Part shown: in pieces, positions 3,719 to 43,365 of the stretch
Position numbering within the stretch: position 1 is the stretch's first letter
Layout: each line of letters starts with the position of its first letter
Source: Caecitellus pseudoparvulus
Lineage: Eukaryota > Protista > Bigyra: Bicosoecida
Length of the DNA: 43,365 nucleotides
NCBI GenBank assembly: GCA_965644315.1
Contig: CBFFRQ010000145.1
Coordinates: 1 to 43,365 of the forward strand
Direction: 5' to 3'
Translations under genes and position numbers: made by a program
Notes under the pieces: model-generated
The model's database searches: none
What the model was told of the DNA's origin: nothing
Seen by the model: the letters and a program-made list of their open reading frames with translations, nothing else

Positions 3719-3893
3719 GCCGGCCTGACCGCTAGCTGCAGCCGGGGTCCAATGCACTTCGACCTCGGAAGCAATTTCACCGCGACAGGTTCATGCCCGA
3801 AGGCGACCTTTGCCTGTGGTATGGGCATGCAGGCTTCGTCCTGTTGATATCTGGGGGTGGTTCAGTAGTTCACAACTTCCTTCGGTGCACAGC

Positions 3894-5903: not shown

Positions 5904-6101
5904 CCGACCTCCCTGGTGAGCCCTTCTGCCCCGCAGTACAGCGTGTGCACCCCGTTGCAGGTGAAAAAATGCAGCGTGCGAACTCATCTTGGCATTAGCC
6001 TAGGCGTTGCAAACTGCTGACAGCAGAACCTGTGCTGAGTTGTCCTGGGTTGTGCTGAGTTGTGCATCGTTTCGCCTGCGTTTCGCCGGCCCAGCACAGG
6101 C

Positions 6102-8491
6102 ATGGCTGCAGCCTTGCGCTGCGGCACACATCGTGCAGCGGCACGTGCCCGGCTGTGCCCAGTCTTACACTTTCCTGTGCGGTGGGCTGGGTCATTTGAA
6201 GCTCTTGGCCTGTCCCCTTCCGTGCAGCAAGGCCTCGCGCAGCAGCTTGTTCACGAGCCCACACCCGTCCAAGTAAGGGCTTTACGGCGGCATTTGTTGA
6301 GTTCCCCACCTCACCCTGCCCTGCCTTGGCGACCGCAGGCTTCATGCATTCCTAAAGTTGTCGCTGGAGACAACGTCTTCATTCACTCGCACACTGGTAG
6401 GTGCTTGGATCCAGGCTGCGCATCGTCTGGCTTCTCTTCACAACAAAACACGGCCGAGCGCAGGGTCAGGAAAGACGCTGGCCTATGTGGCCCCCCTGGT
6501 GCACCGCTTGAAGGTCGAGGAAGAGGGGAACGGAGTCACCGCTCGGCCTAAGCGTCCTCGAGCGCTCATCATCGTGCCAACGCGTGAACTAGTTGCCCAG
6601 GTTCTGGTGCGTAGGCTTGCTCGTGCACCCTGCCACTCCACGCCATCACGCCGCCGCCCCCCCTCTGGCTCAACAGGGAGTGTGCAAAAGTACTGCTCGA
6701 ACTGCCAAGCTTCGGACCGTGGGTGTCTACGGCGGCGCCAGGCCAGCTCCCCAGCGCAAGGCGTTGCTAGACGCACCAGACGTAGTCGTTTGTACTCCCG
6801 GCAGGCTGCTCGCACTGCTGGACGATCGGTCAGTGTCTTTGGCAGACGTCTCGACTTTGGTACTGGATGAAGCAGACACGCTGCTGTCCGAGTCAGAGGG
6901 GTTTCTCCCTCAGGTGCGCCGCATCGCGACGGCCGCTCGGGGCGCGGCTGCCACGCAGGCCCGGGCGGTGCAGTTCATCTTTGCCGGCGCAACGACGAAG
7001 CAGGGGACGACCAAGGCAGCGGCCGCTTTGGCAGGTGGCGAGGTGCTCATGGGTGGGGACGCCAGCGGCAACCGCCCGCCCCCTGCGCTGACGCAGCACT
7101 TCGTGCAGGTTCGCGGCGGGGCAACAGGCAACAAGCACGCTGTCTTGGTGGACTCCATCAAGCAGTACTACATGGCCATGCGACCGGGCATCATGAAGGC
7201 GATCGAGTCAGGTGAACCCTTGAGCCTTGCCTCTGGCAATGCGCCACGACAGCAGTCTGTGGCGAGCACGGGGCAGCTGAAGGCGCTGCTCCAGGCGGCT
7301 GGCAGTCTGCGCAGCCCCCGTGACCGCATGCCAGGACAGGAAGCAGTCAGCGCTGCAGTGGCACCATCAGTGAGTGCTGCTTCGGGCAGGGCGCCTGCCC
7401 ACCATGCAGCTGCCCCCAGTGTGTGGTCGACCACACTGGCAACGACGCCAGACGGAGCTGCCGCGCAGGAGGCGCCAAGGGACGGCGACTCCCCCCCTGC
7501 GGCACGCAGTCACGTTCGTGGGTCAGAGGCTGGTCTGCCAGTGTCCAGGAGCATGGTGCGCGCTGCAGCTGCATCTGTGGAGGCACTGCACCGAGCCAGC
7601 AGCGGTGAGGCGGCCTCTGCGCCCGTGCTGGACCTTGTGGGTGTGGACACCGACGCGCTGCTGCAGGCCGACTGGGAGCGCGCAGTGCCAGTGCTGCAGT
7701 CGCTGTCGCTGGCCTTGCCCCGAACCATAGTCTTCGTCAACACTGCCGCCAGTGCGCGGGCGACGGGGCGGGCGCTGGACGAGCACGGCATCCCCAACGT
7801 GGCCCTGCACAAGGACATGCCGTTCAAGGTGCGGCAGAAAGAGTTCGCTGCATTCCAGGCGGGCTTGACGCCTGTCCTCGTGTGCACGGATGCTGGCGCC
7901 CGAGGGCTGGACCTGCCCTTGGTGGGGCACGTCGTGTCCGCGGACTTCCCGGACAGCCCTGTGGAGTTCTTGCACCGCGTGGGGCGCACTGCGCGGGCAG
8001 GGGCAGTGGGAGTGGCCACCAGCCTCGTCACTCGCAAGGACCTTCCCCTGGCAAAAGCCATCCATGCCTCGTCCTCTGTTGGCCTGCCTCTGGGAGACCT
8101 GTCCAGCAGCCGCCAGCACTACTTGCAGCAGTTGGCCCCCCAGCGTGACTCGGTGCAGCAAGCAGGGGGCAAGGAACGCCCAAAGGCCACCAGGCGGCGC
8201 ATGCTTCCTTCCAAGCGCCGTGCCCTGGCAAAGGCCAATGCCGAGCAGCCAGCCAGCGAGCGGCTCTCGGCCGGCAAAGGGTTCACAGGGCCCATGCGGG
8301 ATGCCCTGCGACAAGCCGGCGTGCTGGAACACCCCCTCGGCCCCGGAAGCAGTCGGCTTGAGCTGGATGCAGCCCCACTGCCTGAGTCTCTCGAGGGCGG
8401 CGCCGGACTGCAGCGTGCCTTGGAGTCTGCGAGCGGCGCGCTGTCCGAGCGCTTGCGCGTCCTGACGCAGGACTCCCGCAACTCACGCTGA
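6102..8491 (+). CDS. DEAD-box RNA helicase, probably organellar (DDX28/RH39-like), spliced
   Basis: Q motif (FEALGL..TPVQ), TGSGKT across an intron, PTRELV, TPGRL, DEAD, ARGLD, HRVGRTARAG. Introns at 6273-6338, 6397-6463 and 6607-6676. The Arg/Ala-rich N-terminus resembles a targeting peptide. Confidence 0.88.
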
Positions 8492-26898: not shown

Positions 26899-27954
26899 AT
26901 GTGGACCAAGGGGCGCCCGGATGTCCTTGCAGGTCTCGGCCAGCCCTCAGCGGCGGCCTCCGTCACAACCATTCGAGGCGACATCGTTCGGGCGTATGAT
27001 GCGCAAGGCTGGGACTGCGTGTACGTTGTACTGGGGAATGAGTCGCAGCCATTGCTTGCTCAGTGCTTCCCTGATGGCCGTCTTGGCCCAGCCAGAGTCC
27101 AAGTGGACCACAGCCGCCTTGCACACGTGCCCAAGGCCGAATGGACTGAGGCGGTGACGCACATGGTTGGGGACCTTGGCAGGCTTTGGAGAGAGAGGGG
27201 TCTGCAAGGCATCCCCAAGGCCATGCGATACATCCATGCAACGAGGGAGAGGTCAGTTGTCCACCCGCCTGTCCCGTTCCAGCCCAAGTTCCAAGAAGGG
27301 GACTCAGTCATCGCACGGGCATTCATCCCACCCGGCCAAGGGGAGGACGGAGAGTCCATGGACTGGGGGTGGACGAATGGGCCTGATGGCCGGTACCCTG
27401 GGCGTGTGTCACAGGGGCATGCCGACGGCACGTACTCCATCACCTTTGAGGATGGCGACAGCCACGACAGAGTGCCTGCCCTGTCTGTGCAAGTGCCACA
27501 GAGGTCGGGGAAAAGGCTGGGCGGGACAAAGAGACAGCGGGCAAGATCAGCTGCGGGTCTGGCAAGGTCTGGGGCAGCTTGTGGTACAGAGGACGACGAG
27601 GATGACGGCAGCGAAGTGCAGGATGGGGATGTGCTCAGCCTCATAGAGCAGCCGCAATGGTACCTCACAGTCAACACCCGTGCGCACACGCGGGCGTACT
27701 TCTACGACCCGCGTGATGGCAAAACTGTGTGTGGGAGGTTCCAGGAAGGGTCCAAGGTCATTGAAGCGGAGTACATGAAGCTGGACGGCGGCGAGCTGCT
27801 TGAGCTTGTCACGAAGTGCGAGCCAGTGAGTCCCCAACATCTGACAGGCGACATCGAGGAAGACCGAGCAGAGTTGCTCATATCCAAGTCAACCTTTTTG
27901 GCCCGCAAGAGCGAGTACAGCATTATTTCCAGAGGAAAACGCAGAAAGACCTGA
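26899..27954 (+). CDS. Hypothetical protein with a Tudor/Agenet-like domain; last host gene before the terminal array
   Basis: FQEGDSVIAR...YPGRVSQGHADGTYSITFEDGD resembles Tudor-like beta-barrels. Basic C-terminal RGKRRKT. Start uncertain. Confidence 0.55.
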   Translation: MWTKGRPDVLAGLGQPSAAASVTTIRGDIVRAYDAQGWDCVYVVLGNESQPLLAQCFPDGRLGPARVQVDHSRLAHVPKAEWTEAVTHMVGDLGRLWRERGLQGIPKAMRYIHATRERSVVHPPVPFQPKFQEGDSVIARAFIPPGQGEDGESMDWGWTNGPDGRYPGRVSQGHADGTYSITFEDGDSHDRVPALSVQVPQRSGKRLGGTKRQRARSAAGLARSGAACGTEDDEDDGSEVQDGDVLSLIEQPQWYLTVNTRAHTRAYFYDPRDGKTVCGRFQEGSKVIEAEYMKLDGGELLELVTKCEPVSPQHLTGDIEEDRAELLISKSTFLARKSEYSIISRGKRRKT

Positions 27955-28191
27955 GAGTAGAAGGAGCTGGGTGCCCTGTGAGCGAGCTTCAGGGAGCAGT
28001 GCAGGCCCACTTCGCAGTGGTGTGCAAGTCAGAGTGGCTCTTTTCGGCGTTGACTTTCGTTTTGAGGAGCCATAGCCCCCCTGGGTGGAGAAGGGAGGAA
28101 GCATCGCACAAGACTTCCGGAATGGGACCTAAGGCAAGAAGCCAAGTGGAGCTGGAGGTCCACGAGGTCAGCGGAGAAGCTGTGGAGACGC

Positions 28192-28205
28192 TTAGGTTAG
28201 GTTAG
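28192..28205 (+). repeat. Variant telomeric seed TTAGG TTAGG TTAG at the proximal junction of element A
   Basis: ...GAGACGC TTAGGTTAGGTTAG CTGTTCAATG... Confidence 0.85.
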
Positions 28206-28410
28206 CTGTTCAATGCATTGCACTTCACCTCCACGCTTGCAACTTGCGCGGTTCGGCTTGGGCGTCACATGCGGCGCTCGCTGCCGTGCACGAATGCACT
28301 GCAGAAGCGCCACAGCGGCTTCCACTTGCGTGGATCTGCAACCAACACAGTCTTGCGACCGTTGTAGAGGTCACCGCTTGCTAGGGCGTGTCCTACGCCC
28401 GCCCCAAGGG
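28206..28410 (-). ncRNA. Conserved structured 3'-terminal RNA module of element A
   Basis: Homologous to 33357-33560. Hairpins ACGGUC-GCAA-GACUGU, UCCAC-GCAA-GUGGA and GUGCA-UUCG-UGCAC, with compensatory changes relative to the B copy. Confidence 0.75.
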
Positions 28411-29007
28411 GAGAAAGTCCCGTCCTTGGCCAGCTTGAACCACACCACAGAGAGTTCATCCAGGTGGCGCGCTCGTCAATCAGCACTTCACATCATAATC
28501 CAACTCACTTCTCTGCACCATTCTTCATGCTTGTTGCCTTCGACATGCCTGCTGCCGCGAGAGAACCTTGCGGGGCAACTGCAGGCCGTTGTGAGGGAGG
28601 GGTGCTGCTGTGGCGTTTCGCTCGAAACGCCGCGGCAGCGGAGGGACCGCCTGGCGCACGAGTGCGCGCCGCAGCACCCCTTCCCTTCCACAGGATACTT
28701 TCTTCATATCAAGGTCAAACTTCTCTTGCACTTGGATGCTGAGTCCGGAGCCGGTGAGTCTATGCCTGCGGCGCCGCGCGTGGGACGTCCGTACGTCAAG
28801 CACGGCTTGTTCCACCCGCGTTGCCGCAGGGCTTCTTCGAGGACTTCAGGAGGCTCCATCATCGTCAGGTAAGTGCCCGTGGACCATTCGTTCAGCAATT
28901 TCTCCTCCTTTCGCAGAGCTATTCGTCAATCATCAGGGGGAGCTTCAGCAGGGGCGCTGCTTCGCAGGAGGGTGACCGTGGTTGTCACCACGACATACGT
29001 AAGCCTG

Positions 29008-30340
29008 CTACTGCCCGCCTGCCCCCTCTGCTGCCCCTCCTCCACTCTCAGGACCATCTCCCATGGAAGTGGACTGTCTTCCTTGGACCAGGCCGTGATC
29101 AAACAAGGTGGACTGCTGGGAGAAGGACCGGGGTGGCCCGCGCTGTGAGCGGTCAGGGAAGTACGTACGCTGTGTCCTCCGCGTGCGCACATCTCGAGTC
29201 TGCCTGTTCACAGCACTGGGCACCGGCTTCGTGTAGCCCGGAAAAGGACAGGCACGGCCATGAGCTGCCCACCAGAGGTACCTTGCGTGCCGCTGGACGT
29301 GCACGTGCTCTGGCGAGGTAAGTCTGAGCATGCGCTGCAGCACAATGTCCCACGCAGATGAAGCGAAGCCAGCCCCAGCCTGGAGCAGCTTCTTCCAGAA
29401 GGCTGGGGGCTTGACTGGACCACGAGTGGAGCGAAGGCGGAGGTGGGGGTGGCTCATGACAGCCGCCCCTTCAGGACTCCACAGTTGCTGCGCAGGATCC
29501 TCATCGATGCGGAAGGGCCATTGGCCACACAAGAGCAGGCGGAGAAGGAGCTTGGAGGACGATCGAGGGAGGGCACTCCGGGACTTCGCCGACTGGAGGG
29601 CGCGAGTCACGGGGGCAGGGATGGTCAAAAGAGCGGAGGGGTGCCCACCTTGGGCCACGCTGTTGGACTGGGCCGCGGTGGCCAGCATGGCTGCCAAGGC
29701 ATCCTGTCTGGCCTCGTCTAAGGCTGGGTGGCGGCACGAGAGCAAGACGTGCTCGTGCAACGTTGCCCAGGAGACACTCCCGCAGAGTGGACACTCCTCA
29801 AAGAGTGTCGGGGTGTCTTCGCCATGGAAAAGCTGAAGGGTTTGCCAGAGATGGACCTTCACAACCTGTGGCCGGTTGCCCTCGCACACCCATAGCAATG
29901 GGCTTGGGGCTGACGGGATGGGGTGGAGCCAGCAGAAGAACCGAGCCCCCACACCCACATGGTACGGCCGTGGGCGACGCACACGGTGCAGGTCACCAGT
30001 GGGGGAGTACCCGAGAGCGGGGCACTCGGACGACTGGGCGATGTGCAAGAAGGAGCACACGACATGCTGTCGGGCGCGCCACGACATGTCGGCAGGGAAG
30101 TCCGGGGGCAGCATCAAGCTGGAGGAGGAGGATGCAGCCAGCCCAAGGTACTTGATCTTGGGTGGTGTGGGATCCAGATCCAGCGTATCCGTCACGCTGT
30201 CGTCTGATGAAGTGTCCGCATTCCCGTCTCTCTGAACCAACTGCTCGAGGGCACTGCGGCTTGGCAGGCAGCCGTGCAACCACAAGTCGAACAGACCATG
30301 AAGGGCGAAGGGGGCGGGATGCCCGACCGTGCCCGATCCA
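29008..30340 (-). CDS. C-terminal continuation of the RT polyprotein in the -1 frame, with a CCHC zinc finger
   Basis: CPLCGSVSWATLHEHVLLSC is the zinc knuckle found downstream of LINE RTs. This frame overlaps the end of the RT ORF, implying a frameshift at about 30290-30340. Confidence 0.7.
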
Positions 30341-32555
30341 GGTCACCGTTCAGGTTGACGAGGAACTCCATCGTGACTGGGGAGGGGAGCATGTCGAGCG
30401 CAATCGGCAGGGTCTGCAGCATGACCCTCGCTACTGGTGTCCCGGCGTGAAGATCGGAGATGAGCTTGCGGAAGATGTTCGAGCGCAGCTTGGTGGCGCG
30501 TATGTGTGCAGGTAGGAAGCCGCACACGGCAAGTTTTGCATAGTTATGCATCCTTGCCAGGGAACTTTGCATGCCGATCTGGGTCTTGCTCAGAGCAGTA
30601 GCGAGGCCCCGGTCCACTTCGCGCAGGGGAAGGACAGAGTTGCGGACCTGAGTAGCCAGTATGTAGTCCGCCGCTGCCGTGATGGAGGCACTACCAATAC
30701 GCTGCTTGAGGTCAATGCCCACCCACTCGCCAGTGAGCAGAGCACTGCAGGCAAACCCTGCTTGCGTGCAGGAAAGACTGGCCTGCTTGAGAGCAGAGGC
30801 CCGTGTCTTGCGGACATCTTCACACAGAGGGGCACCAAGGAAGACATAGCTGCGTGTTCGCTCGATGGGAACGCCACCGACGGTGAGTGTCTTTCCAGAC
30901 TTTAGCCATCTGGATCGCCAAATTGCCTTGCGCCTCTCGTTCGCACAGACTCCGTTGACTGGTGCTGCGTTGGTAATCACCATAATGCCTGACTTCCTTG
31001 GGTTGATCTTCAAGCCAACACGTGCTCCCACAGCCCGCACTTCATGAAACATTCTTTGCATCGCAGATGGGGACGTGGCCAAGCAAGCAAGATCGTCGGC
31101 ATACAGAGTGTGAGTGAGGCGGCCTGCAGATGTAGGCACCCCAGCTCCGGCGTATCCCTGTCCAGGGAGTTCTTGGAGGCGCTGGGACAGAACATCGATG
31201 GCGACTTTAAAGAGTAAGGGTGACAGGGCGCCACCCTGAGGGACGCCGCTTGTGACAGGGAGGGGATCGCACAGTCCGTGGGCCGTGTGGATGGAGACAC
31301 TGGCCCGAGACATGTACTCTGACACAGCCTTGAGCAGGGGCTGAGGCAGTCGGGCAGCTTCAAGGATCTCAAGGATTGCAGCATGGCTGACCGAGTCGAA
31401 CGCTGCCTTAAAGTCGATGAACATGACAAGGACGTGCTTGTCTGGTGAGCGTCTGAGGTATCCGTTCGCGGCCTCTTGAAGAGCAATGATTTGCTCGTGT
31501 GTGTTGCGTGACTTGCTGAACCCTGCTTGCTCTCGCGAGATCCAAGATTTCATCCATGCTTCCACACAGGCCGCGACGACGGAGAAGAACAACTTAGCTT
31601 GTGGAGGCCGACAGACGATCAGCCTGTACGTGTCCACGCGTCCAGGTCGGCTAGACTTCTTGGGAATGAGTGTGCCCACACCCTCGTGGTACTTTGCAGG
31701 ACAGGACCCGTGAGCCAGTGTGTCCAGCAGGGCTTGGGTGTACCTTTCCTTGAAGGCCAGGCTTGAGTACTTCAGGTGTTCAGCTTGAAACTGGCCTGTT
31801 CCAGGATTGCGGTGCAAGTTGAGAGCATCGATGGCTGACATGACCGTTCGCTTCGTGGGCAGCCAGACTTCTGGGGGGCGAAACTCTTCATGCTTGGAGG
31901 GCAGCAGCCTTGCAAGCCCAAACCGCAGAGGGGTTAGAGCTGTCACATCTGGGCTGATGATCGCTGCCATCTGTTCACGGACAGCTTGTTTTACCGCCGC
32001 ACTTGCATACACCAGCTTTCCGTCTCCCCCATACACAGACTGAATGGAAGTTGCCCCAATTTTCTTTCGTCGGCCAGAGAGACGCCTGACATGAACATGG
32101 GCAGCGAAGGGATCAGTGAGTGCCAGTTCTTTGATACGCTGCTTAATCTGAGTGACGGAGTGCTTGTGCTTCTTCTTGAGAAGGTGAGTGCAGCGCCGCA
32201 TTGACTCTTTTCTCATCCACACAGTATGTGCAAGGTCTTCCGCTATCATACCTCTCTGGTCCTCAAGGAGACGGGACATGACAGGATCTGAAGATCTCGC
32301 AGTGTTGTGGACCAAAGCAAGGCGTCGATCAATGCGGCATAGCTCACGCCGCAACTTCTTCGCGCGCGCCGTCATCTTCTTCTTCAGCTTGCTGTACTTC
32401 GATACATCGGTGAAGACTTGCAGTACTTCAGGGGATGTTCCTTTGCAGGTGGCGTGTGCTTTCTCAGCCGCTGCAGCAACCAGCCCGTCCAGCTGGGTCA
32501 ATACCTGCTCTTCTTCGGTGCCGGCTGGGGGCAAGGGTGTGGTAGCCTGGGCTTC
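30192..32555 (-). CDS. Reverse transcriptase, non-LTR (LINE) type, N-terminally truncated
   Basis: Domain 0 PGTGQF..EHLK, LIPKK, YRLI, QAGF, FIDFKAAFDSV, GVPQGGALSPLLF, YADD, GLKINPRKS, YVFLG. Confidence 0.93.
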   Translation of the reverse strand, partial: EAQATTPLPPAGTEEEQVLTQLDGLVAAAAEKAHATCKGTSPEVLQVFTDVSKYSKLKKKMTARAKKLRRELCRIDRRLALVHNTARSSDPVMSRLLEDQRGMIAEDLAHTVWMRKESMRRCTHLLKKKHKHSVTQIKQRIKELALTDPFAAHVHVRRLSGRRKKIGATSIQSVYGGDGKLVYASAAVKQAVREQMAAIISPDVTALTPLRFGLARLLPSKHEEFRPPEVWLPTKRTVMSAIDALNLHRNPGTGQFQAEHLKYSSLAFKERYTQALLDTLAHGSCPAKYHEGVGTLIPKKSSRPGRVDTYRLIVCRPPQAKLFFSVVAACVEAWMKSWISREQAGFSKSRNTHEQIIALQEAANGYLRRSPDKHVLVMFIDFKAAFDSVSHAAILEILEAARLPQPLLKAVSEYMSRASVSIHTAHGLCDPLPVTSGVPQGGALSPLLFKVAIDVLSQRLQELPGQGYAGAGVPTSAGRLTHTLYADDLACLATSPSAMQRMFHEVRAVGARVGLKINPRKSGIMVITNAAPVNGVCANERRKAIWRSRWLKSGKTLTVGGVPIERTRSYVFLGAPLCEDVRKTRASALKQASLSCTQAGFACSALLTGEWVGIDLKQRIGSASITAAADYILATQVRNSVLPLREVDRGLATALSKTQIGMQSSLARMHNYAKLAVCGFLPAHIRATKLRSNIFRKLISDLHAGTPVARVMLQTLPIALDMLPSPVTMEFLVNLNGDLDRARSGIPPPSPFMVCSTCGCTAACQAAVPSSSWFRETGMRTLHQTTA

Positions 32556-33356
32556 GGGTTAGGGTTAGGGTTAGGGTTAGGGTTAGGGTTAGGGTTAGCT
32601 AATCGTAATGCATTTCACCTCGGTTAGGGTTAGGGTTAGGGTTAGGGTTAGGGTTAGGGTTAGGGTTAGGGTTAGGGTTAGGGTTAGGGTTAGGGGTTTT
32701 TTTTTCTTTTTTAGGGTTAGGGTTAGGGTTAGGGGTAGGGTTAGGGTTAGGGTTAGGGTTAGGGTTAGGGTTAGGGTTAGGGTTAGGGTTAGGGTTAGGG
32801 TTAGGGTTAGGGTTAGGGTTAGGGTTAGGGTTAGGGTTAGGGTTAGGGTTAGGGTTAGGGTTAGGGTTAGGGTTAGGGTTAGGGTTAGGGTTAGGGTTAG
32901 GGTTAGGGTTAGGGTTAGGGTTAGGGTTAGGGTTAGGGTTAGGGTTAGGGTTAGGGTTAGGGTTAGGGTTAGGGTTAGGGTTAGGGTTAGGGTTAGGGTT
33001 AGGGTTAGGGTTAGGGTTAGGGTTAGGGTTAGGGTTAGGGTTAGGGTTAGGGTTAGGGTTAGGGTTAGGGTTAGGGTTAGGGTTAGGGTTAGGGTTAGGG
33101 TTAGGGTTAGGGTTAGGGTTAGGGTTAGGGTTAGGGTTAGGGTTAGGGTTAGGGTTAGGGTTAGGGTTAGGGTTAGGGTTAGGGTTAGGGTTAGGGTTAG
33201 GGTTAGGGTTAGGGTTAGGGTTAGGGTTAGGGTTAGGGTTAGGGTTAGGGTTAGGGTTAGGGTTAGGGTTAGGGTTAGGGTTAGGGTTAGGGTTAGGGTT
33301 AGGGTTAGGGTTAGGGTTAGGGTTAGGGTTAGGGTTAGGGTTAGGGTTAGGGTTAG
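32556..33356 (+). repeat. Interstitial (former terminal) TTAGGG tract, interrupted at 32599-32621 and 32696-32710
   Basis: Direct reading; one GTAGGG variant near 32735. Confidence 0.97.
32599..32621 (-). mobile_element. 23-nt stub related to the element 3' terminus (third variant)
   Basis: GGTTAG|CTAATCGTAATGCATTTCACCTC|GGTTAG shares CT, AATGCAT and TTCACCTC with the element A end CTGTTCAATGCATTGCACTTCACCTC. Confidence 0.7.
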
Positions 33357-33560
33357 CTACTCAATGCATTGCAGATTGCCTCCATGCAGGCTACATCATG
33401 GTACAGCTTGGGCTTGGACATGTGGTGCCACCTGCGCCACAACAGAATGCAGTGACACAGACACCACGACGGCACCGCTTGCACGGCTTTGCGACTAGCA
33501 CAGACTCGTGTCCGTTGTATAAGTCGCCGTCTGTCTTGGCGCTTCAGCGCCCGCCCCGGT
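33357..33560 (-). ncRNA. Conserved structured 3'-terminal RNA module of element B
   Basis: Homolog of 28206-28410. Hairpins ACGGAC-ACGA-GUCUGU, GCCGU-GCAA-GCGGU and GUGGUGUC...GGCACCAC. Confidence 0.75.
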
Positions 33561-33971
33561 GGGATGGTCTTGAGGTGTAGGTCCAGGTCTCGGTCCACTC
33601 TTGTCTTGTCCGTCCAGTCCAGTCTCGTCCGTCTCGGTCCGATGTCCAGGGGTGGAGACCCGACTTGCTTGGCTTGGGTGGCGGTGTGGGCTGGAGGATA
33701 TGGACTCGACACGGACTGGGTGTTGCTGAGATGCAAGCACACGACCCAGCCCGGCTGTCCCTTCGGCTCAGGTTTGGGGGCGGCCTCACAGATCTTGCTG
33801 CAAGTGCCTTCCCCTTCCACTGAGCCGAGTCCTGATGTGTTGGTATCGATGTTGGGTTGGTGATGGTGAGGTTGGGTTGGACTTTCCAATGTCCGATGTC
33901 AGCTATGTGCGTCGGTCGCGACACAAAGCTTCAGTCATGTGTGGCACAGGGAGTATGCCCCCACAGGTGAC

Positions 33972-36215
33972 TTACATCAGGCGTCCACCCATCTGCCCGA
34001 TCGAGATGTGGGGCACATCCTTGACCTTGGGCAGGCGACCCTCGCCGTCTTCAGGCACCAGCCGCTTGAGGGGGTCCTTGACCTCAGCCTCCAGGGTGGC
34101 GGCCTGCTGTCGGGTCATCCGCCCATGAGGCATGGCCACCCTTGTGCCCTTGCCAGCGATGAGGGTCTGGGGGTGCACGGTGCCGTCGGTGGCCTTGTGA
34201 GGCAGGGGGAAGTCATCTCGGAGAGACTGGAGTGCCCCTCGAAGCCTGTCCCGGAAGGGTGCTGGACTGCCCGCCTCGGGTGTGGTCCAGATCCGGTACA
34301 AGACGTTGATGCCTTCGGCTGCCAGCCGGGTCATGCACTTGTGCAGGGGCAGCTCGTCATGGAGGTCAGGGATGTCGGGGTTCCACAGCACCAGCTTGCC
34401 TCGATCATGGTCGACGAGGATGAGCTGCAGATGGGCCGTGTTGTCGGTCCACACCTCTCGAAGTGCGAAGGCATACAGCACTCCGTCGAGGTGCCCCTCT
34501 TGGTCACCCTCTTCATCAACCTGGCTGGGGTCGACGCCGGCCTGGCCAAGGTCATCATGCCCGGCTGGGGCACGGTACCCTTGGTTGATGCGGTCGATGA
34601 GCAGGTGCAGGCCGGGAAGCAGGACTGGTGGTGTACCTGGGGCCAGGAAGGTGTCATCCGGCGAGTGCTGGTGCAGCATGTTGCGGAAGACGGCCACCCG
34701 TTGCCCGTCTGAGCGGAAGGGGGAGGGTGGCTTCTGGCCGACGTCCATGATGTCCGAGCTGGACGAGTCACTGACCACCCCCTCCAGCTGCCTGACCATG
34801 TGCTTGAAGGCAAGCTGGGCAGCGTTGATGGTGGCTGCATGCTGGAGTAGGAGGAGGTCCCCAGCCTCGAAGACCCTCTCCCCTGCTGCCGTCTCGAGAC
34901 AGGCCTGGACACAGGGGCGGCCCCCCACGTTAGAGTACACGTGGGTCGATGACAGCAGGTCGGCCAGAGGGCCAGGCTTGATGGGGTACTCGGCCAGGTG
35001 CTCGGGTGTCCGCACACTGTCATGAAGAGGCACCACCCTTGTGATCACCTCCCATGCTGCTGCTGCAGACGGCCGATACCGGTGCACCTCGGGGCTTGCC
35101 TCGCCCGACGGGGTGGGGGACGGCCACTTGCGGTCGACGCCCCGCTGCACCCTTGATGAAGGCAACATGGCATGCACCACAGGGGTGGTGACGGTATCTT
35201 TGGGTGAGCCTTGGGTGGCAGGTGGTGAGGTTGGTCGAGGTGCAGGTGGCCGGACGTTCTTGATGAAGACGTCCTCGAAGGTGAGGGATCGTCCGGCTGA
35301 CTTGCCCTTTCCTCGCTTGCCTCGACGGGTCTTCTTCTTCTTCGGTGCCTTGTCGAGCTGAGTGTCAGTCCAGGTCGATGGTGTCTTGGTGTCGACAGGT
35401 GCATCACCCTCGGAGGGGACGGATTGTCTGACACTGGGACGGACGGCTTGGGCTGGCACGGGGCCATGGTCGAAGTGGGACCTAACGAGGCACATGACCT
35501 TGGCAACATCACCTGACTGGCAGGCGATTTCGGTTGCTTCCTTGGTCACTTGGTGGGCCACTTGGATGGCGGTGGGGTGGGCCTTCACCTTCACTTTCGC
35601 CTTCGCCGATGCGAACTGCTTGGTGTTGGTGTAGGCCACGGCGACGAACCCACCTTGGCCGACTCGAATGGCGAAGTCGTCCTCTTGAGCAGCAAGAATG
35701 CGAAGTTGACGTGCCACTGTTGGTGAATCACCCTCACTTCCGAGCGTGACGAGGATGGTTGGCGATCCGGTGGGTCCCTGGCGCAGGGCCGCATTGGCGT
35801 TGCCGAATTCCGCACTCAGCCCTGGGATCAGCCGTTCGGCGGCTTCCCCATAGACCTCGAGCCACATGTCCCGTGCCGAAGATGAACTATCATGATCAGT
35901 CTTGGGCAGGGGTCCTCCAAGCTCGAAGGTGCGTGCGGCACCCCGACGTGGCATGTCAGTGAAGACACCTGTTCTGGGGCCGAGCACTTGCTTGCGCTTC
36001 AGGCACCCCTCCACGAAGAGGACCCCCAGGACTTGATCCACTTGGGCGTTCATGATGCTTGTCAATGATGCTTTTGATGTCGATCCCAGGTGCATGCCCC
36101 GACCGAGGGCGCAAACTGGGAGCCACGGTGCGATGGTGTGCGGAATTCGCACTACCCCGCCCCGGTGCGCACCACCCAACCAGCAAGCACTGTGCAACAC
36201 CACACTTGGGTGCAC
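33972..36215 (-). CDS. Element B protein of unknown function (about 690-750 aa) with a basic NLS-like tract and a possible degenerate Ulp1-like fold
   Basis: Uninterrupted 747-codon ORF, first ATGs near 36095 and 36053. Contains KAPKKKKTRRGKRGKGK and HLQLILVDHDRGKLVLWNP. No RT motifs. Confidence 0.75.
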   Translation of the reverse strand: MHPSVVLHSACWLGGAHRGGVVRIPHTIAPWLPVCALGRGMHLGSTSKASLTSIMNAQVDQVLGVLFVEGCLKRKQVLGPRTGVFTDMPRRGAARTFELGGPLPKTDHDSSSSARDMWLEVYGEAAERLIPGLSAEFGNANAALRQGPTGSPTILVTLGSEGDSPTVARQLRILAAQEDDFAIRVGQGGFVAVAYTNTKQFASAKAKVKVKAHPTAIQVAHQVTKEATEIACQSGDVAKVMCLVRSHFDHGPVPAQAVRPSVRQSVPSEGDAPVDTKTPSTWTDTQLDKAPKKKKTRRGKRGKGKSAGRSLTFEDVFIKNVRPPAPRPTSPPATQGSPKDTVTTPVVHAMLPSSRVQRGVDRKWPSPTPSGEASPEVHRYRPSAAAAWEVITRVVPLHDSVRTPEHLAEYPIKPGPLADLLSSTHVYSNVGGRPCVQACLETAAGERVFEAGDLLLLQHAATINAAQLAFKHMVRQLEGVVSDSSSSDIMDVGQKPPSPFRSDGQRVAVFRNMLHQHSPDDTFLAPGTPPVLLPGLHLLIDRINQGYRAPAGHDDLGQAGVDPSQVDEEGDQEGHLDGVLYAFALREVWTDNTAHLQLILVDHDRGKLVLWNPDIPDLHDELPLHKCMTRLAAEGINVLYRIWTTPEAGSPAPFRDRLRGALQSLRDDFPLPHKATDGTVHPQTLIAGKGTRVAMPHGRMTRQQAATLEAEVKDPLKRLVPEDGEGRLPKVKDVPHISIGQMGGRLM

Positions 36216-36278
36216 GAGCGCCTGGATTAGGCAATGTTAGCACTTCACAACTTGTGATTAGCTTGACATTTGGAAAGT

Positions 36279-39200
36279 TTAGGGTTAGGGTTAGGGTTAG
36301 CTACTCAATGGTTAGGGTTAGGGTTAGGGTTAGGGTTAGGGTTAGGGTTAGGGTTAGGGTTAGGGTTAGGGTTAGGGTTAGGGTTAGGGTTAGGGTTAGG
36401 GTTAGGGTTAGGGTTAGGGTTAGGGTTAGGGTTAGGGTTAGGGTTAGGGTTAGGGTTAGGGTTAGGGTTAGGGTTAGGGTTAGGGTTAGGGTTAGGGTTA
36501 GGGTTAGGGTTAGGGTTAGGGTTAGGGTTAGGGTTAGGGTTAGGGTTAGGGTTAGGGTTAGGGTTAGGGTTAGGGTTAGGGTTAGGGTTAGGGTTAGGGT
36601 TAGGGTTAGGGTTAGGGTTAGGGTTAGGGTTAGGGTTAGGGTTAGGGTTAGGGTTAGGGTTAGGGTTAGGGTTAGGGTTAGGGTTAGGGTTAGGGTTAGG
36701 GTTAGGGTTAGGGTTAGGGTTAGGGTTAGGGTTAGGGTTAGGGTTAGGGTTAGGGTTAGGGTTAGGGTTAGGGTTAGGGTTAGGGTTAGGGTTAGGGTTA
36801 GGGTTAGGGTTAGGGTTAGGGTTAGGGTTAGGGTTAGGGTTAGGGTTAGGGTTAGGGTTAGGGTTAGGGTTAGGGTTAGGGTTAGGGTTAGGGTTAGGGT
36901 TAGGGTTAGGGTTAGGGTTAGGGTTAGGGTTAGGGTTAGGGTTAGGGTTAGGGTTAGGGTTAGGGTTAGGGTTAGGGTTAGGGTTAGGGTTAGGGTTAGG
37001 GTTAGGGTTAGGGTTAGGGTTAGGGTTAGGGTTAGGGTTAGGGTTAGGGTTAGGGTTAGGGTTAGGGTTAGGGTTAGGGTTAGGGTTAGGGTTAGGGTTA
37101 GGGTTAGGGTTAGGGTTAGGGTTAGGGTTAGGGTTAGGGTTAGGGTTAGGGTTAGGGTTAGGGTTAGGGTTAGGGTTAGGGTTAGGGTTAGGGTTAGGGT
37201 TAGGGTTAGGGTTAGGGTTAGGGTTAGGGTTAGGGTTAGGGTTAGGGTTAGGGTTAGGGTTAGGGTTAGGGTTAGGGTTAGGGTTAGGGTTAGGGTTAGG
37301 GTTAGGGTTAGGGTTAGGGTTAGGGTTAGGGTTAGGGTTAGGGTTAGGGTTAGGGTTAGGGTTAGGGTTAGGGTTAGGGTTAGGGTTAGGGTTAGGGTTA
37401 GGGTTAGGGTTAGGGTTAGGGTTAGGGTTAGGGTTAGGGTTAGGGTTAGGGTTAGGGTTAGGGTTAGGGTTAGGGTTAGGGTTAGGGTTAGGGTTAGGGT
37501 TAGGGTTAGGGTTAGGGTTAGGGTTAGGGTTAGGGTTAGGGTTAGGGTTAGGGTTAGGGTTAGGGTTAGGGTTAGGGTTAGGGTTAGGGTTAGGGTTAGG
37601 GTTAGGGTTAGGGTTAGGGTTAGGGTTAGGGTTAGGGTTAGGGTTAGGGTTAGGGTTAGGGTTAGGGTTAGGGTTAGGGTTAGGGTTAGGGTTAGGGTTA
37701 GGGTTAGGGTTAGGGTTAGGGTTAGGGTTAGGGTTAGGGTTAGGGTTAGGGTTAGGGTTAGGGTTAGGGTTAGGGTTAGGGTTAGGGTTAGGGTTAGGGT
37801 TAGGGTTAGGGTTAGGGTTAGGGTTAGGGTTAGGGTTAGGGTTAGGGTTAGGGTTAGGGTTAGGGTTAGGGTTAGGGTTAGGGTTAGGGTTAGGGTTAGG
37901 GTTAGGGTTAGGGTTAGGGTTAGGGTTAGGGTTAGGGTTAGGGTTAGGGTTAGGGTTAGGGTTAGGGTTAGGGTTAGGGTTAGGGTTAGGGTTAGGGTTA
38001 GGGTTAGGGTTAGGGTTAGGGTTAGGGTTAGGGTTAGGGTTAGGGTTAGGGTTAGGGTTAGGGTTAGGGTTAGGGTTAGGGTTAGGGTTAGGGTTAGGGT
38101 TAGGGTTAGGGTTAGGGTTAGGGTTAGGGTTAGGGTTAGGGTTAGGGTTAGGGTTAGGGTTAGGGTTAGGGTTAGGGTTAGGGTTAGGGTTAGGGTTAGG
38201 GTTAGGGTTAGGGTTAGGGTTAGGGTTAGGGTTAGGGTTAGGGTTAGGGTTAGGGTTAGGGTTAGGGTTAGGGTTAGGGTTAGGGTTAGGGTTAGGGTTA
38301 GGGTTAGGGTTAGGGTTAGGGTTAGGGTTAGGGTTAGGGTTAGGGTTAGGGTTAGGGTTAGGGTTAGGGTTAGGGTTAGGGTTAGGGTTAGGGTTAGGGT
38401 TAGGGTTAGGGTTAGGGTTAGGGTTAGGGTTAGGGTTAGGGTTAGGGTTAGGGTTAGGGTTAGGGTTAGGGTTAGGGTTAGGGTTAGGGTTAGGGTTAGG
38501 GTTAGGGTTAGGGTTAGGGTTAGGGTTAGGGTTAGGGTTAGGGTTAGGGTTAGGGTTAGGGTTAGGGTTAGGGTTAGGGTTAGGGTTAGGGTTAGGGTTA
38601 GGGTTAGGGTTAGGGTTAGGGTTAGGGTTAGGGTTAGGGTTAGGGTTAGGGTTAGGGTTAGGGTTAGGGTTAGGGTTAGGGTTAGGGTTAGGGTTAGGGT
38701 TAGGGTTAGGGTTAGGGTTAGGGTTAGGGTTAGGGTTAGGGTTAGGGTTAGGGTTAGGGTTAGGGTTAGGGTTAGGGTTAGGGTTAGGGTTAGGGTTAGG
38801 GTTAGGGTTAGGGTTAGGGTTAGGGTTAGGGTTAGGGTTAGGGTTAGGGTTAGGGTTAGGGTTAGGGTTAGGGTTAGGGTTAGGGTTAGGGTTAGGGTTA
38901 GGGTTAGGGTTAGGGTTAGGGTTAGGGTTAGGGTTAGGGTTAGGGTTAGGGTTAGGGTTAGGGTTAGGGTTAGGGTTAGGGTTAGGGTTAGGGTTAGGGT
39001 TAGGGTTAGGGTTAGGGTTAGGGTTAGGGTTAGGGTTAGGGTTAGGGTTAGGGTTAGGGTTAGGGTTAGGGTTAGGGTTAGGGTTAGGGTTAGGGTTAGG
39101 GTTAGGGTTAGGGTTAGGGTTAGGGTTAGGGTTAGGGTTAGGGTTAGGGTTAGGGTTAGGGTTAGGGTTAGGGTTAGGGTTAGGGTTAGGGTTAGGGTTA

Positions 39201-41231
39201 GGGTTAGGGTTAGGGTTAGGGTTAGGGTTAGGGTTAGGGTTAGGGTTAGGGTTAGGGTTAGGGTTAGGGTTAGGGTTAGGGTTAGGGTTAGGGTTAGGGT
39301 TAGGGTTAGGGTTAGGGTTAGGGTTAGGGTTAGGGTTAGGGTTAGGGTTAGGGTTAGGGTTAGGGTTAGGGTTAGGGTTAGGGTTAGGGTTAGGGTTAGG
39401 GTTAGGGTTAGGGTTAGGGTTAGGGTTAGGGTTAGGGTTAGGGTTAGGGTTAGGGTTAGGGTTAGGGTTAGGGTTAGGGTTAGGGTTAGGGTTAGGGTTA
39501 GGGTTAGGGTTAGGGTTAGGGTTAGGGTTAGGGTTAGGGTTAGGGTTAGGGTTAGGGTTAGGGTTAGGGTTAGGGTTAGGGTTAGGGTTAGGGTTAGGGT
39601 TAGGGTTAGGGTTAGGGTTAGGGTTAGGGTTAGGGTTAGGGTTAGGGTTAGGGTTAGGGTTAGGGTTAGGGTTAGGGTTAGGGTTAGGGTTAGGGTTAGG
39701 GTTAGGGTTAGGGTTAGGGTTAGGGTTAGGGTTAGGGTTAGGGTTAGGGTTAGGGTTAGGGTTAGGGTTAGGGTTAGGGTTAGGGTTAGGGTTAGGGTTA
39801 GGGTTAGGGTTAGGGTTAGGGTTAGGGTTAGGGTTAGGGTTAGGGTTAGGGTTAGGGTTAGGGTTAGGGTTAGGGTTAGGGTTAGGGTTAGGGTTAGGGT
39901 TAGGGTTAGGGTTAGGGTTAGGGTTAGGGTTAGGGTTAGGGTTAGGGTTAGGGTTAGGGTTAGGGTTAGGGTTAGGGTTAGGGTTAGGGTTAGGGTTAGG
40001 GTTAGGGTTAGGGTTAGGGTTAGGGTTAGGGTTAGGGTTAGGGTTAGGGTTAGGGTTAGGGTTAGGGTTAGGGTTAGGGTTAGGGTTAGGGTTAGGGTTA
40101 GGGTTAGGGTTAGGGTTAGGGTTAGGGTTAGGGTTAGGGTTAGGGTTAGGGTTAGGGTTAGGGTTAGGGTTAGGGTTAGGGTTAGGGTTAGGGTTAGGGT
40201 TAGGGTTAGGGTTAGGGTTAGGGTTAGGGTTAGGGTTAGGGTTAGGGTTAGGGTTAGGGTTAGGGTTAGGGTTAGGGTTAGGGTTAGGGTTAGGGTTAGG
40301 GTTAGGGTTAGGGTTAGGGTTAGGGTTAGGGTTAGGGTTAGGGTTAGGGTTAGGGTTAGGGTTAGGGTTAGGGTTAGGGTTAGGGTTAGGGTTAGGGTTA
40401 GGGTTAGGGTTAGGGTTAGGGTTAGGGTTAGGGTTAGGGTTAGGGTTAGGGTTAGGGTTAGGGTTAGGGTTAGGGTTAGGGTTAGGGTTAGGGTTAGGGT
40501 TAGGGTTAGGGTTAGGGTTAGGGTTAGGGTTAGGGTTAGGGTTAGGGTTAGGGTTAGGGTTAGGGTTAGGGTTAGGGTTAGGGTTAGGGTTAGGGTTAGG
40601 GTTAGGGTTAGGGTTAGGGTTAGGGTTAGGGTTAGGGTTAGGGTTAGGGTTAGGGTTAGGGTTAGGGTTAGGGTTAGGGTTAGGGTTAGGGTTAGGGTTA
40701 GGGTTAGGGTTAGGGTTAGGGTTAGGGTTAGGGTTAGGGTTAGGGTTAGGGTTAGGGTTAGGGTTAGGGTTAGGGTTAGGGTTAGGGTTAGGGTTAGGGT
40801 TAGGGTTAGGGTTAGGGTTAGGGTTAGGGTTAGGGTTAGGGTTAGGGTTAGGGTTAGGGTTAGGGTTAGGGTTAGGGTTAGGGTTAGGGTTAGGGTTAGG
40901 GTTAGGGTTAGGGTTAGGGTTAGGGTTAGGGTTAGGGTTAGGGTTAGGGTTAGGGTTAGGGTTAGGGTTAGGGTTAGGGTTAGGGTTAGGGTTAGGGTTA
41001 GGGTTAGGGTTAGGGTTAGGGTTAGGGTTAGGGTTAGGGTTAGGGTTAGGGTTAGGGTTAGGGTTAGGGTTAGGGTTAGGGTTAGGGTTAGGGTTAGGGT
41101 TAGGGTTAGGGTTAGGGTTAGGGTTAGGGTTAGGGTTAGGGTTAGGGTTAGGGTTAGGGTTAGGGTTAGGGTTAGGGTTAGGGTTAGGGTTAGGGTTAGG
41201 GTTAGGGTTAGGGTTAGGGTTAGGGTTAGGG

Positions 41232-41272
<41 letters not shown>

Positions 41273-43365
41273 GGTTAGGGTTAGGGTTAGGGTTAGGGTT
41301 AGGGTTAGGGTTAGGGTTAGGGTTAGGGTTAGGGTTAGGGTTAGGGTTAGGGTTAGGGTTAGGGTTAGGGTTAGGGTTAGGGTTAGGGTTAGGGTTAGGG
41401 TTAGGGTTAGGGTTAGGGTTAGGGTTAGGGTTAGGGTTAGGGTTAGGGTTAGGGTTAGGGTTAGGGTTAGGGTTAGGGTTAGGGTTAGGGTTAGGGTTAG
41501 GGTTAGGGTTAGGGTTAGGGTTAGGGTTAGGGTTAGGGTTAGGGTTAGGGTTAGGGTTAGGGTTAGGGTTAGGGTTAGGGTTAGGGTTAGGGTTAGGGTT
41601 AGGGTTAGGGTTAGGGTTAGGGTTAGGGTTAGGGTTAGGGTTAGGGTTAGGGTTAGGGTTAGGGTTAGGGTTAGGGTTAGGGTTAGGGTTAGGGTTAGGG
41701 TTAGGGTTAGGGTTAGGGTTAGGGTTAGGGTTAGGGTTAGGGTTAGGGTTAGGGTTAGGGTTAGGGTTAGGGTTAGGGTTAGGGTTAGGGTTAGGGTTAG
41801 GGTTAGGGTTAGGGTTAGGGTTAGGGTTAGGGTTAGGGTTAGGGTTAGGGTTAGGGTTAGGGTTAGGGTTAGGGTTAGGGTTAGGGTTAGGGTTAGGGTT
41901 AGGGTTAGGGTTAGGGTTAGGGTTAGGGTTAGGGTTAGGGTTAGGGTTAGGGTTAGGGTTAGGGTTAGGGTTAGGGTTAGGGTTAGGGTTAGGGTTAGGG
42001 TTAGGGTTAGGGTTAGGGTTAGGGTTAGGGTTAGGGTTAGGGTTAGGGTTAGGGTTAGGGTTAGGGTTAGGGTTAGGGTTAGGGTTAGGGTTAGGGTTAG
42101 GGTTAGGGTTAGGGTTAGGGTTAGGGTTAGGGTTAGGGTTAGGGTTAGGGTTAGGGTTAGGGTTAGGGTTAGGGTTAGGGTTAGGGTTAGGGTTAGGGTT
42201 AGGGTTAGGGTTAGGGTTAGGGTTAGGGTTAGGGTTAGGGTTAGGGTTAGGGTTAGGGTTAGGGTTAGGGTTAGGGTTAGGGTTAGGGTTAGGGTTAGGG
42301 TTAGGGTTAGGGTTAGGGTTAGGGTTAGGGTTAGGGTTAGGGTTAGGGTTAGGGTTAGGGTTAGGGTTAGGGTTAGGGTTAGGGTTAGGGTTAGGGTTAG
42401 GGTTAGGGTTAGGGTTAGGGTTAGGGTTAGGGTTAGGGTTAGGGTTAGGGTTAGGGTTAGGGTTAGGGTTAGGGTTAGGGTTAGGGTTAGGGTTAGGGTT
42501 AGGGTTAGGGTTAGGGTTAGGGTTAGGGTTAGGGTTAGGGTTAGGGTTAGGGTTAGGGTTAGGGTTAGGGTTAGGGTTAGGGTTAGGGTTAGGGTTAGGG
42601 TTAGGGTTAGGGTTAGGGTTAGGGTTAGGGTTAGGGTTAGGGTTAGGGTTAGGGTTAGGGTTAGGGTTAGGGTTAGGGTTAGGGTTAGGGTTAGGGTTAG
42701 GGTTAGGGTTAGGGTTAGGGTTAGGGTTAGGGTTAGGGTTAGGGTTAGGGTTAGGGTTAGGGTTAGGGTTAGGGTTAGGGTTAGGGTTAGGGTTAGGGTT
42801 AGGGTTAGGGTTAGGGTTAGGGTTAGGGTTAGGGTTAGGGTTAGGGTTAGGGTTAGGGTTAGGGTTAGGGTTAGGGTTAGGGTTAGGGTTAGGGTTAGGG
42901 TTAGGGTTAGGGTTAGGGTTAGGGTTAGGGTTAGGGTTAGGGTTAGGGTTAGGGTTAGGGTTAGGGTTAGGGTTAGGGTTAGGGTTAGGGTTAGGGTTAG
43001 GGTTAGGGTTAGGGTTAGGGTTAGGGTTAGGGTTAGGGTTAGGGTTAGGGTTAGGGTTAGGGTTAGGGTTAGGGTTAGGGTTAGGGTTAGGGTTAGGGTT
43101 AGGGTTAGGGTTAGGGTTAGGGTTAGGGTTAGGGTTAGGGTTAGGGTTAGGGTTAGGGTTAGGGTTAGGGTTAGGGTTAGGGTTAGGGTTAGGGTTAGGG
43201 TTAGGGTTAGGGTTAGGGTTAGGGTTAGGGTTAGGGTTAGGGTTAGGGTTAGGGTTAGGGTTAGGGTTAGGGTTAGGGTTAGGGTTAGGGTTAGGGTTAG
43301 GGTTAGGGTTAGGGTTAGGGTTAGGGTTAGGGTTAGGGTTAGGGTTAGGGTTAGGGTTAGGGTTA
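36279..43365 (+). repeat. Telomere, (TTAGGG)n, about 7 kb, G-strand toward the end
   Basis: Essentially perfect hexamer array to the end of the window, with the 10-nt stub at 36301 and one TTTAGGG variant near 41250. Confidence 0.99.
36301..36310 (-). mobile_element. 10-nt stub identical to the terminal 10 nt of element B
   Basis: GGTTAG|CTACTCAATG|GTTAGGG matches 33357-33366 exactly. Confidence 0.8.

Follow-up and report, generated by a model that had tools for sequence, protein, structure and literature searches.

The stretch of DNA analysed here, hereafter the window, is contig CBFFRQ010000145.1 (C145) of Caecitellus pseudoparvulus, taken whole at 43,365 bp from an assembly of 30.6 Mb in 215 contigs. 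From position 28192 onward it is a stack in which four inserts alternate with telomeric TTAGGG repeats. We conclude with good confidence that this stack is made of copies of a lineage-restricted, telomere-only group of retrotransposons without long terminal repeats (non-LTR), equipped with an apurinic/apyrimidinic-type endonuclease (APE), together with a partner that lacks reverse transcriptase (RT) and would be mobilised in trans. We call the RT-encoding member element A and its RT-less partner element B.

The G-rich telomere strand is the + strand of the window, and the sense strand of the inserts is the minus strand. The inserts lie at 28206-32555, 32599-32621, 33357-36278 and 36301-36310, and the 5' ends of all four face the terminal TTAGGG array. 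Read on the + strand, each starts right after ...GGTTAG (28206 CTGTTCAATGCATTGC..., 32599 CTAATCGTAATGCATTTCACCTC, 33357 CTACTCAATGCATTGC... and 36301 CTACTCAATG). Telomere repeats adjoin each insert on its far side, and no A/T run was seen at the proximal end of any of them. The sequence-only reading from which this work started had described the inserts in these terms, with this polarity, without poly(A) and followed by TTAGGG, and the sequence bore it out on every point. TRF delimited two TTAGGG arrays, 32556-33356 and 36279-43365, the second of which is 7.1 kb long with a 99% match and runs up to the window end.

The first insert is a 5'-truncated copy of element A (28206-32555, minus strand) that holds the RT, the C-terminal region and the 3' untranslated region, without the APE and N-terminal regions. 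Its open reading frame (ORF) 30192-32534(-) matched RVT_1 with an E value of 1.7e-32, over residues 290-534 (30933-31667). The complete element, which the earlier reading had asked to see reconstructed, is 7600 nt long on a metagenome scaffold (L045); the window copy corresponds to nt 3251-7600 of it, that is, the 3' 57%, with 97.3% identity over 4350 nt. Copies of A elsewhere in the genome reach further 5' than that of the window, and the protein of the L045 copy, which has CCCTAA repeats on both flanks, is 98% identical to that of a genome copy (C184). Full-length A has one frame of ~2160 aa, made up of an N-terminal part of ~660 aa without known domain, Exo_endo_phos, RVT_1 and a long C-terminal region. 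Pfam gave E values of 3e-31 for RVT_1 and 8.9e-8 for Exo_endo_phos (PF03372; 32.6 bits vs a cut-off of 24.5), and the closest solved structures to the RT were R2Bm (1.5e-19) and L1 ORF2p (4e-14). The autonomous members A, A' and C are all ~7.6 kb long with the same single ORF, namely an N-terminal region, APE, RT and a Cys-His C-terminus; the sole Cys-His motif in the C-terminal region of A is CPLCGSVSWATLHEHVLLSCRH. Self-BLAST of A revealed neither LTRs nor other terminal repeats. By these sequence features (non-LTR RT, N-terminal APE, no LTRs, frequent 5' truncation and constant 3' ends), A classes as an APE-type non-LTR retrotransposon, or long interspersed element (LINE).

In the window, the remnant of this long ORF (29008-32534, minus strand) is split into two frames, 30192-32534 and 29008-30285, with a break near 30309. 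Since contigs of three sequencing runs (X1, X5, X8) carry an extra G after 30309, and since a second genome copy (C114) that is 99.7% identical to window A has an unbroken ORF, the break is probably an assembly indel. The genome contains ~4 long and ~6 truncated copies of A. Outside it, sequence relatives are few: an exhaustive HMMER search yielded 8 proteins at E <= 1e-30, the remaining matches being generic LINE RTs with 25-30% identity, and the relatives amount to two near-identical metagenome copies and two proteins with 30-34% identity (P0013, P0014). The latter are distant polyproteins, found on a Logan SRR24000141 contig (L044) and on a coral metagenome contig (L043), with one ORF of 3724 aa and ~2100 aa before the APE; at the N-terminus they are unrelated to A and B, and neither telomere repeats nor the 3' module described below were found on their contigs.

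The APE domain is N-terminal to the RT. The motifs SWNV, LTEPGG, MGDLN, LDHIL and SDH were present in A, A', family C and the two distant relatives, and the catalytic residues N, E, D-N, D and SDH were kept in all 5 aligned sequences. A sequence-only search of the PDB gave a weak match (ExoIII, E 0.007), and it was the fold search that confirmed the domain: the predicted structure (pLDDT 62.6, pTM 0.73) matched APE1, TRAS1-EN, L1-EN and R1Bm-EN at E ~1e-9, with a TM score against the TRAS1 endonuclease of 0.72-0.76 by target. For A and A' (85% identical, A' having an intact 2005-aa frame), the ratio of non-synonymous to synonymous substitution (dN/dS) was 0.12 in each of three regions, namely the APE, the RT and the N-terminal one. 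When A is compared with family C, amino acid identity in the APE is 62-66%, which equals that of the RT and exceeds that of the N-terminal region (45%). These comparisons indicate that the APE is intact and under purifying selection. The sequence-only reading had likened the elements to endonuclease-deficient Penelope-like elements; because the APE is real and constrained, with all catalytic motifs and an APE fold, this analogy had to be given up.

Element B (33357-36278, minus strand) is a full-length element of 2922 nt that consists of a 5' leader, an ORF of the N-terminal type and a ~200-nt 3' module only. The leader (36054-36278), which begins (A)CTTTCCAAATGTCAAGCTAATCACA..., is common to full-length A; the ORF (33972-36053) encodes 693 aa starting MNAQVDQV and is homologous to the N-terminal region of the A ORF; and the 3' module (33357-33558) scores 170 bits against the covariance model used below. 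Over 601 aa, the ORF and the N-terminal region of A share 40% identity (E 9e-107), and the nucleotide identity with A is 74% in the 5' 366 nt and 67% in the 3' ~205 nt. No RT or endonuclease was found in B, and searches of Pfam, of PDB sequences and of the ESM Atlas gave no match to its protein. The protein has a basic run, KKKKTRRGKRGKGKS; a CCHC motif was found neither in it nor in the N-terminal region of A. Thus, the pairing of a LINE-type RT element with an RT-less partner, as first read, held: RVT_1 is in A, none is in B, and the two share the 3' module and the 5' leader.

Window B matches ~47 full-length copies in the genome, which are ~100% identical to one another and are accompanied by additional 5'-truncated ones; the assembly holds 73 B-type tails. 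The RT-less member is therefore more abundant than the RT member. When set against a copy with 97% identity from an independent metagenome contig, the B ORF showed 42 synonymous and 21 non-synonymous differences (dN/dS 0.16), which points to B encoding a protein under selection. The sequence-only reading had envisaged, as a way in which it could fail, that A might be an ordinary member of a described telomere-repeat LINE family and B its deletion derivative. One part of this holds, since A is APE-type and of the same general kind as TRAS/SART. The rest does not: the architecture departs from TRAS/SART (one fused ORF, with neither a CCHC-bearing ORF1 nor poly(A)) and from MoTeR (no restriction-like endonuclease, REL), and B is not a simple derivative, because identity is 40% in the shared ORF and 67-74% in the nucleotides of the ends, and because its own ORF is under selection. 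Judged from these sequence comparisons, B is an old, independently evolving partner rather than a recent deletion derivative. On the metagenome contig that carries the 97%-identical copy, B is flanked by telomere repeats and followed by the 5' end of another element. We also noticed that, upstream of B on an independent metagenome contig (L066:1-40), the telomere tract reads ..CCCTAACC-TAG-CTAACCC.., in which TAG is possibly a 3-nt element-tail stub.

What A and B share most conspicuously is their 3' end. In all families, a structured RNA module of ~180 nt leads into an unpaired tail of ~21 nt and then into CTAA in telomere phase; in window A the module lies at 28206-28406 (214.9 bits), with a ~180-nt multi-helix structure followed by a 21-nt unpaired tail (..GAAGTGCAATGCATTGAACAG). 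We aligned the last 230 nt of six families and folded the alignment with RNAalifold. The consensus has nine helices and 56 pairs, with 95% of cells paired and the last ~21 nt unpaired. Compensatory changes occurred at 19 pairs vs 8.7 +/- 2.0 in column shuffles (0/500) and 2-7 when partners were slid by 1-3 columns. This covariation supports the notion that the module is a conserved RNA structure, and the related 3' termini noted at first sight turned out to belong to a covarying nine-helix module present in six families.

The assembly contains ~9 tail types, all with AATGCATT, mostly as the perfect palindrome CAATGCATTG, 3-9 nt before the junction, which is then followed by CTAACC. The palindrome, of 10 nt, sits in the unpaired tails, for example at 28212-28221 and 33363-33372 of the window, and in head-to-tail pairs precedes the 5' end of the following element by ~15-20 nt; by analogy it could serve RNA dimerisation, or act as promoter or terminator for the neighbour as in HeT-A. 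The two short inserts of the window are remnants of such ends, both on the minus strand. The 10-nt stub (36301-36310) equals the last 10 nt of the B tail (CATTGAGTAG), and the 23-nt abortive stub (32599-32621) comprises the unpaired tail and the first paired bases of a 3' module, in a tail variant that is unique in the assembly. With a 25-nt one in L053, these are the three shortest stubs seen, and all end inside the tail or at the first short helix.

We searched the whole assembly with a covariance model of the 3' module and scored the 150 best full-length matches, all at E <= 6e-26. There are at least 150 matches in all, and 150/150 of those scored lie within 24 kb of contig ends in a single polarity, the 3' end inward. 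The + strand matches (n=123) are all <24 kb from the contig start and the minus strand ones (n=27) all <20 kb from the high end of their contig; on contigs of 0.2-1.3 Mb, the scored matches occur only at the ends. No dispersed or inverted copy was seen among these 150 in 30.6 Mb, and none at any internal GGTTAG site. The whole-assembly search thus came out as the telomeric reading had predicted. The long TTAGGG arrays that it had placed beside the elements were borne out as well: terminal arrays measure 0.8-7 kb, and the genome has TERT (Telomerase_RBD, E 7e-21, in a 1389-aa open frame).

The junctions are equally regular on one side. CTAA directly follows 73/73 B tails in the whole assembly, and the reversed control pattern gave 0 matches. 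The first reading had all inserts beginning GGTTAG|CT. This applies to A, B and the stubs but not to the other families, which start after GGTTAG with ATC.., CAAC.., TTCATTC.., GAAG.. or TCAG.., so that the GGTTAG| register is what is universal. The minimal junction between two elements is tail-CTAA-5' end, seen 7 times between B and B (GAGTAG-CTAA-CTTTCC) and once between C and C; 7-nt spacers (CTAACCC) are likewise common. On the other side, full-length B 5' ends come after CCCTAA with 0-2 additional A or after CCC with 3-5 additional A, and once after the filler GGCAAGG. Copies of A and B are 5'-truncated at many points, with differing flanks and a constant 3' end.

In the mechanism that we favour, the RT would recognise the 3' module, and from this shared, covarying module we infer copying of B in trans. 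A CUAA at the 3' end of the RNA or past it would pair with a G-strand 3'-OH ending in ...TTAG, and cDNA would be synthesised toward the chromosome end, that is, by target-primed reverse transcription. Synthesis would often abort at the foot of the module structure, as the stubs of 10, 23 and 25 nt suggest, or further in, giving the 5' truncations, and telomere repeats would then be added after the cDNA end. As to the primer, we see about an even chance that the conserved APE of the element itself provides it by nicking at TTAG^GG. We attach a lesser weight to a natural or eroded chromosome end, perhaps left ending in TTAG by telomerase, and the small remainder goes to both sources being used.

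The lengths of the telomere tracts bear directly on this question. In the window, a 43-nt tract (32556-32598, + strand) separates A from the 23-nt stub, a slightly degenerate one of 735 nt (32622-33356, + strand) lies between this stub and B, and one of 22 nt (36279-36300, + strand) between B and the 10-nt stub, after which the terminal array of ~7 kb (36311-43365, + strand) begins. Over the assembly, tracts proximal to elements are mostly of 3-72 nt, with counts of one at 3 nt, 8 at 4 nt, 6 at 6-7 nt and 10 at 14-23 nt, and two are longer (544 and 735 nt). Such tiny tracts beneath terminal arrays of 0.8-7 kb are what would be expected if the RT extended the natural chromosome 3'-OH without endonuclease, from any RNA bearing the module, with telomerase resuming afterwards, so that the elements would mainly heal short or broken ends and the window would be a strict chronology. 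They are less easily reconciled with classical endonuclease-dependent, site-specific insertion anywhere in duplex telomere repeats, as in Bombyx TRAS1/SART1, with no role for natural ends, since random nicking of 1-7 kb arrays does not, without extra assumptions, predict tracts skewed to <1 to 4 repeats. Yet short internal tracts could also arise if long ones were hit repeatedly until they became too short as targets, and B sits 735 nt into a tract; copies between long tracts, such as the 735 nt and 7 kb around window B, are what classical insertion would give.

The junctions themselves point both ways. Several 3' ends sit on non-telomeric DNA with just CTA or CTAACC between, and many junctions are on less than one repeat, under the at least three repeats that SART1Bm needs (PMC7265360); this favours natural ends, and the same junctions, in which 3-6 nt of repeat adjoin unique DNA, count against classical insertion. 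So does the varying phase of the 5' junctions (CCCTAA|, CCC|AAA, filler GGCAAGG). Priming on natural ends would also agree with the lack of copies at internal GGTTAG sites. Telomerase products characteristically end ...TTAG, which is the exact primer register seen here. On the other hand, the GGTTAG| register, invariant in ~9 tail families and at every B tail, fits site-specific cleavage, and the repeat phase is kept across both window stubs; the 23-nt stub keeps it exactly on both sides (GGTTAG|stub|GGTTAGGG), as insertion into an existing array would. Junction phase is not decisive between a nick and a natural end, since microhomology and a variable phase would be expected under either model.

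The inner edge of the stack was informative in this respect. A dispersed, non-telomeric repeat (26912-28191) is broken off at 28191 and followed by a degenerate telomere seed of 14 nt, TTAGGTTAGGTTAG (28192-28205, + strand). The repeat has 7 other copies, 93-94% identical, at internal sites and in both orientations, each of which stops at query end 4191/4192, and contigs from 4 sequencing runs carry it past 28191 onward into other sequence. Because the repeat is cut at 28191 but continuous elsewhere, the chromosome once ended inside it and gained telomere repeats, from which the stack grew outward; the start of the stack marks an old chromosome break healed by telomere addition. That the stack starts on a break healed with 14 nt of repeat speaks for growth on natural ends.

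Against endonuclease-free extension stands the APE itself, which is intact, has an APE fold, is as constrained as the RT and is more conserved between families than the N-terminal region; the same conservation speaks for classical insertion. In Drosophila, TART and TAHRE attach to chromosome ends and have nonetheless retained an APE domain, a point in favour of natural ends. We regard exclusive priming on natural ends as possible though somewhat doubtful, and classical insertion as a serious contender that falls short of an even chance. As for the sequence-only reading, extension of a bare chromosome 3'-OH is possible, and its view of the window as a chronological record of end additions is plausible and inseparable from insertion into existing tracts.

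Another explanation would make exchange between chromosome ends, through break-induced replication or gene conversion, the main process by which the arrays spread and stay uniform, with retrotransposition rare or extinct. The near-identity of the full-length B copies, the seven identical B-B junctions and the 99.7% identity between the C114 copy and window A could all be accounted for in this way. Yet 5' truncation points are many and proximal flanks differ; the C114 and window copies of A, near-identical as they are, have different flanks, and still other flanks adjoin the 3' end of A in other strains and metagenomes; the ORFs are intact and under purifying selection; and stubs of 10-25 nt are hard to produce by recombination. 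We consider it improbable as the main cause.

Several points weigh against the retrotransposon interpretation as we state it. Transcription, the true RNA 3' end and the mobilisation of B in trans are deduced from sequence. Part of the near-identity of B copies, and of the seven identical B-CTAA-B junctions, could come from recombination between chromosome ends. The RT of A is placed at a generic LINE level (25-30% identity), and what distinguishes A from TRAS/SART and from MoTeR is its architecture. For the N-terminal (B-type) ORF, an AlphaFold prediction from a 5-sequence alignment was unusable (pLDDT 39), and calling this ORF, which lacks a recognisable fold, 'Gag-like' is an analogy only. 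Lastly, junctions were examined on assembled Logan contigs, which break where alternative flanks exist. This, together with the probable indel error at 30309 in window A, leaves some room for chimeric joining of telomeric reads during assembly. However, the same element-telomere junctions recur on >50 contig ends and, in data of other studies, on independent metagenome contigs (L045, L066), where A and B have CCCTAA repeats on both sides, and we find an assembly artefact hardly credible.

Some further features were noticed. The 735-nt tract holds a T-run of 16 nt (TTTTTTTTTCTTTTTT, 32697-32712; on the C strand CCCTAA-AAAAGAAAAAAAAA-CCCCTAA) that looks like a poly(A)-tail stub copied onto the G strand, or like telomerase stuttering. 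AT-rich blocks with 20-30% GC, vs ~63% for the genome, lie directly proximal to A-type copies (L035:1-3030, that is C194:1-3030, and L002:1250-1485 of C114) and are possibly foreign or viral insertions or organelle DNA. Further inside the window, a G-rich tandem repeat (20021-20667; periods 39, 117 and 156, ~76% match) lies within the + strand ORF 18356-21304, which appears to encode a Gly/Glu-rich repeat protein.

To our knowledge, telomere-specialised retrotransposons are known from few lineages only, namely flies, silkworm, a few fungi, rotifers, Giardia and Chlorella, and our literature search turned up no paper that describes elements of this sort from stramenopiles or from other protists. 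The closest functional likeness is with Drosophila HeT-A/TAHRE, and it extends to TART: these, too, are confined to telomeres, where they are arrayed head to tail with their 5' ends facing the chromosome end, and their RT elements keep an APE. Moreover, HeT-A shares untranslated ends and an ORF1-type gene with the rarer, RT-encoding TAHRE and needs RT in trans, as B would from A; here again the RT-less member predominates (~47 full-length copies and 73 tails of B vs ~4 long and ~6 truncated copies of A). In contrast, the Drosophila elements have poly(A) ends in a host without telomerase and simple repeats, whereas here there is no poly(A) and there are repeat-phase junctions, TTAGGG arrays and TERT. 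Unlike in the Drosophila telomeric elements, a single ORF here joins the N-terminal gene to APE-RT, and similarity is generic only (25-30%). A strict equivalence, in which the host has no telomerase and the elements are the telomere, was ruled out by TERT and the terminal arrays.

Bombyx TRAS1/SART1, of the R1 clade, resemble the present elements in being APE-type, in using one telomere-repeat position in one orientation, in living in a host with telomerase repeats and in having an RT that recognises the 3' untranslated region; the TRAS1 endonuclease is among the best fold matches to the APE of A. They differ in having two ORFs, CCHC knuckles in ORF1 and poly(A), in place of a single ORF without N-terminal CCHC and a structured module followed by CTAA, and no RT-less partner is described for them, unlike B. 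The architecture of the R1-clade TRAS/SART is thus lacking, as all tails read ..CATTGA..|CTAACC without an A-run and the one fused ORF has no N-terminal CCHC. MoTeR1/MoTeR2 of Magnaporthe, FoTeR of Fusarium and Cnl1 of Cryptococcus also sit within the TTAGGG telomeres of microbes that have telomerase, where they keep a fixed orientation and are separated by short repeat tracts, and MoTeR1/MoTeR2, like A and B, pair a long RT element with a short RT-less one that has the same two ends. These fungal elements belong to the CRE/SLACS clade, with a REL C-terminal to the RT, defined by the motif CCHC..RHD/N..E..R/KPD..D/E, and no APE (PMC12857005). The CRE clade was ruled out for A, which has an APE N-terminal to the RT and a C-terminal CPLCGSVSWATLHEHVLLSCRH without the RHD..E..PD spacing.

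Endonuclease-deficient Penelope-like elements (Athena, Coprina, Terminons) share the 5' end toward the telomere, short capping tracts and 3' ends able to pair with the G-overhang. They have a Penelope-type RT and no endonuclease, whereas the RT here is of LINE type (RVT_1, best structures R2 and L1) and comes with a conserved APE, which together rule out a Penelope-like identity. Stringent-type pairs of a LINE and a short interspersed element, such as eel UnaL2/UnaSINE1, offer a further parallel, in that the non-autonomous partner is mobilised because its structured 3' RNA element is the one found in the LINE that encodes the RT. B, by comparison, encodes a 693-aa protein under selection and shares the 5' leader, and its module has nine helices, not a single stem-loop.

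More tentatively, and we think this rather unlikely as matters stand, an endonuclease-bearing LINE group might act as a second RNA-templated end-healing system beside telomerase, priming via the 4-nt CUAA on telomerase-left ...TTAG-3' or nearly eroded ends and adding a protein-coding partner preferentially to critically short telomeres. If so, it would be a living intermediate between telomerase-only and fly-type retrotransposon telomeres, of independent origin in a stramenopile. More generally, elements of this kind bear on how a selfish element becomes part of chromosome-end maintenance. The organism has a small genome, is apparently culturable and is widespread in marine samples, so that natural ends vs nicks, and the rescue of short telomeres, could become testable; the nine-helix 3' module gives a concrete handle on RT recognition. 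Set beside the known systems, the C. pseudoparvulus elements bring together features otherwise found apart. The RT-encoding member is an APE-type LINE like those of silkworm. Its abundant partner lacks RT, carries only an ORF1-type gene and has both ends in common with it, which recalls HeT-A/TAHRE of flies and MoTeR1/2 of fungi. Junctions keep the repeat phase and copies are capped by short tracts, as is the case for Athena in rotifers, and the host has a telomerase gene.

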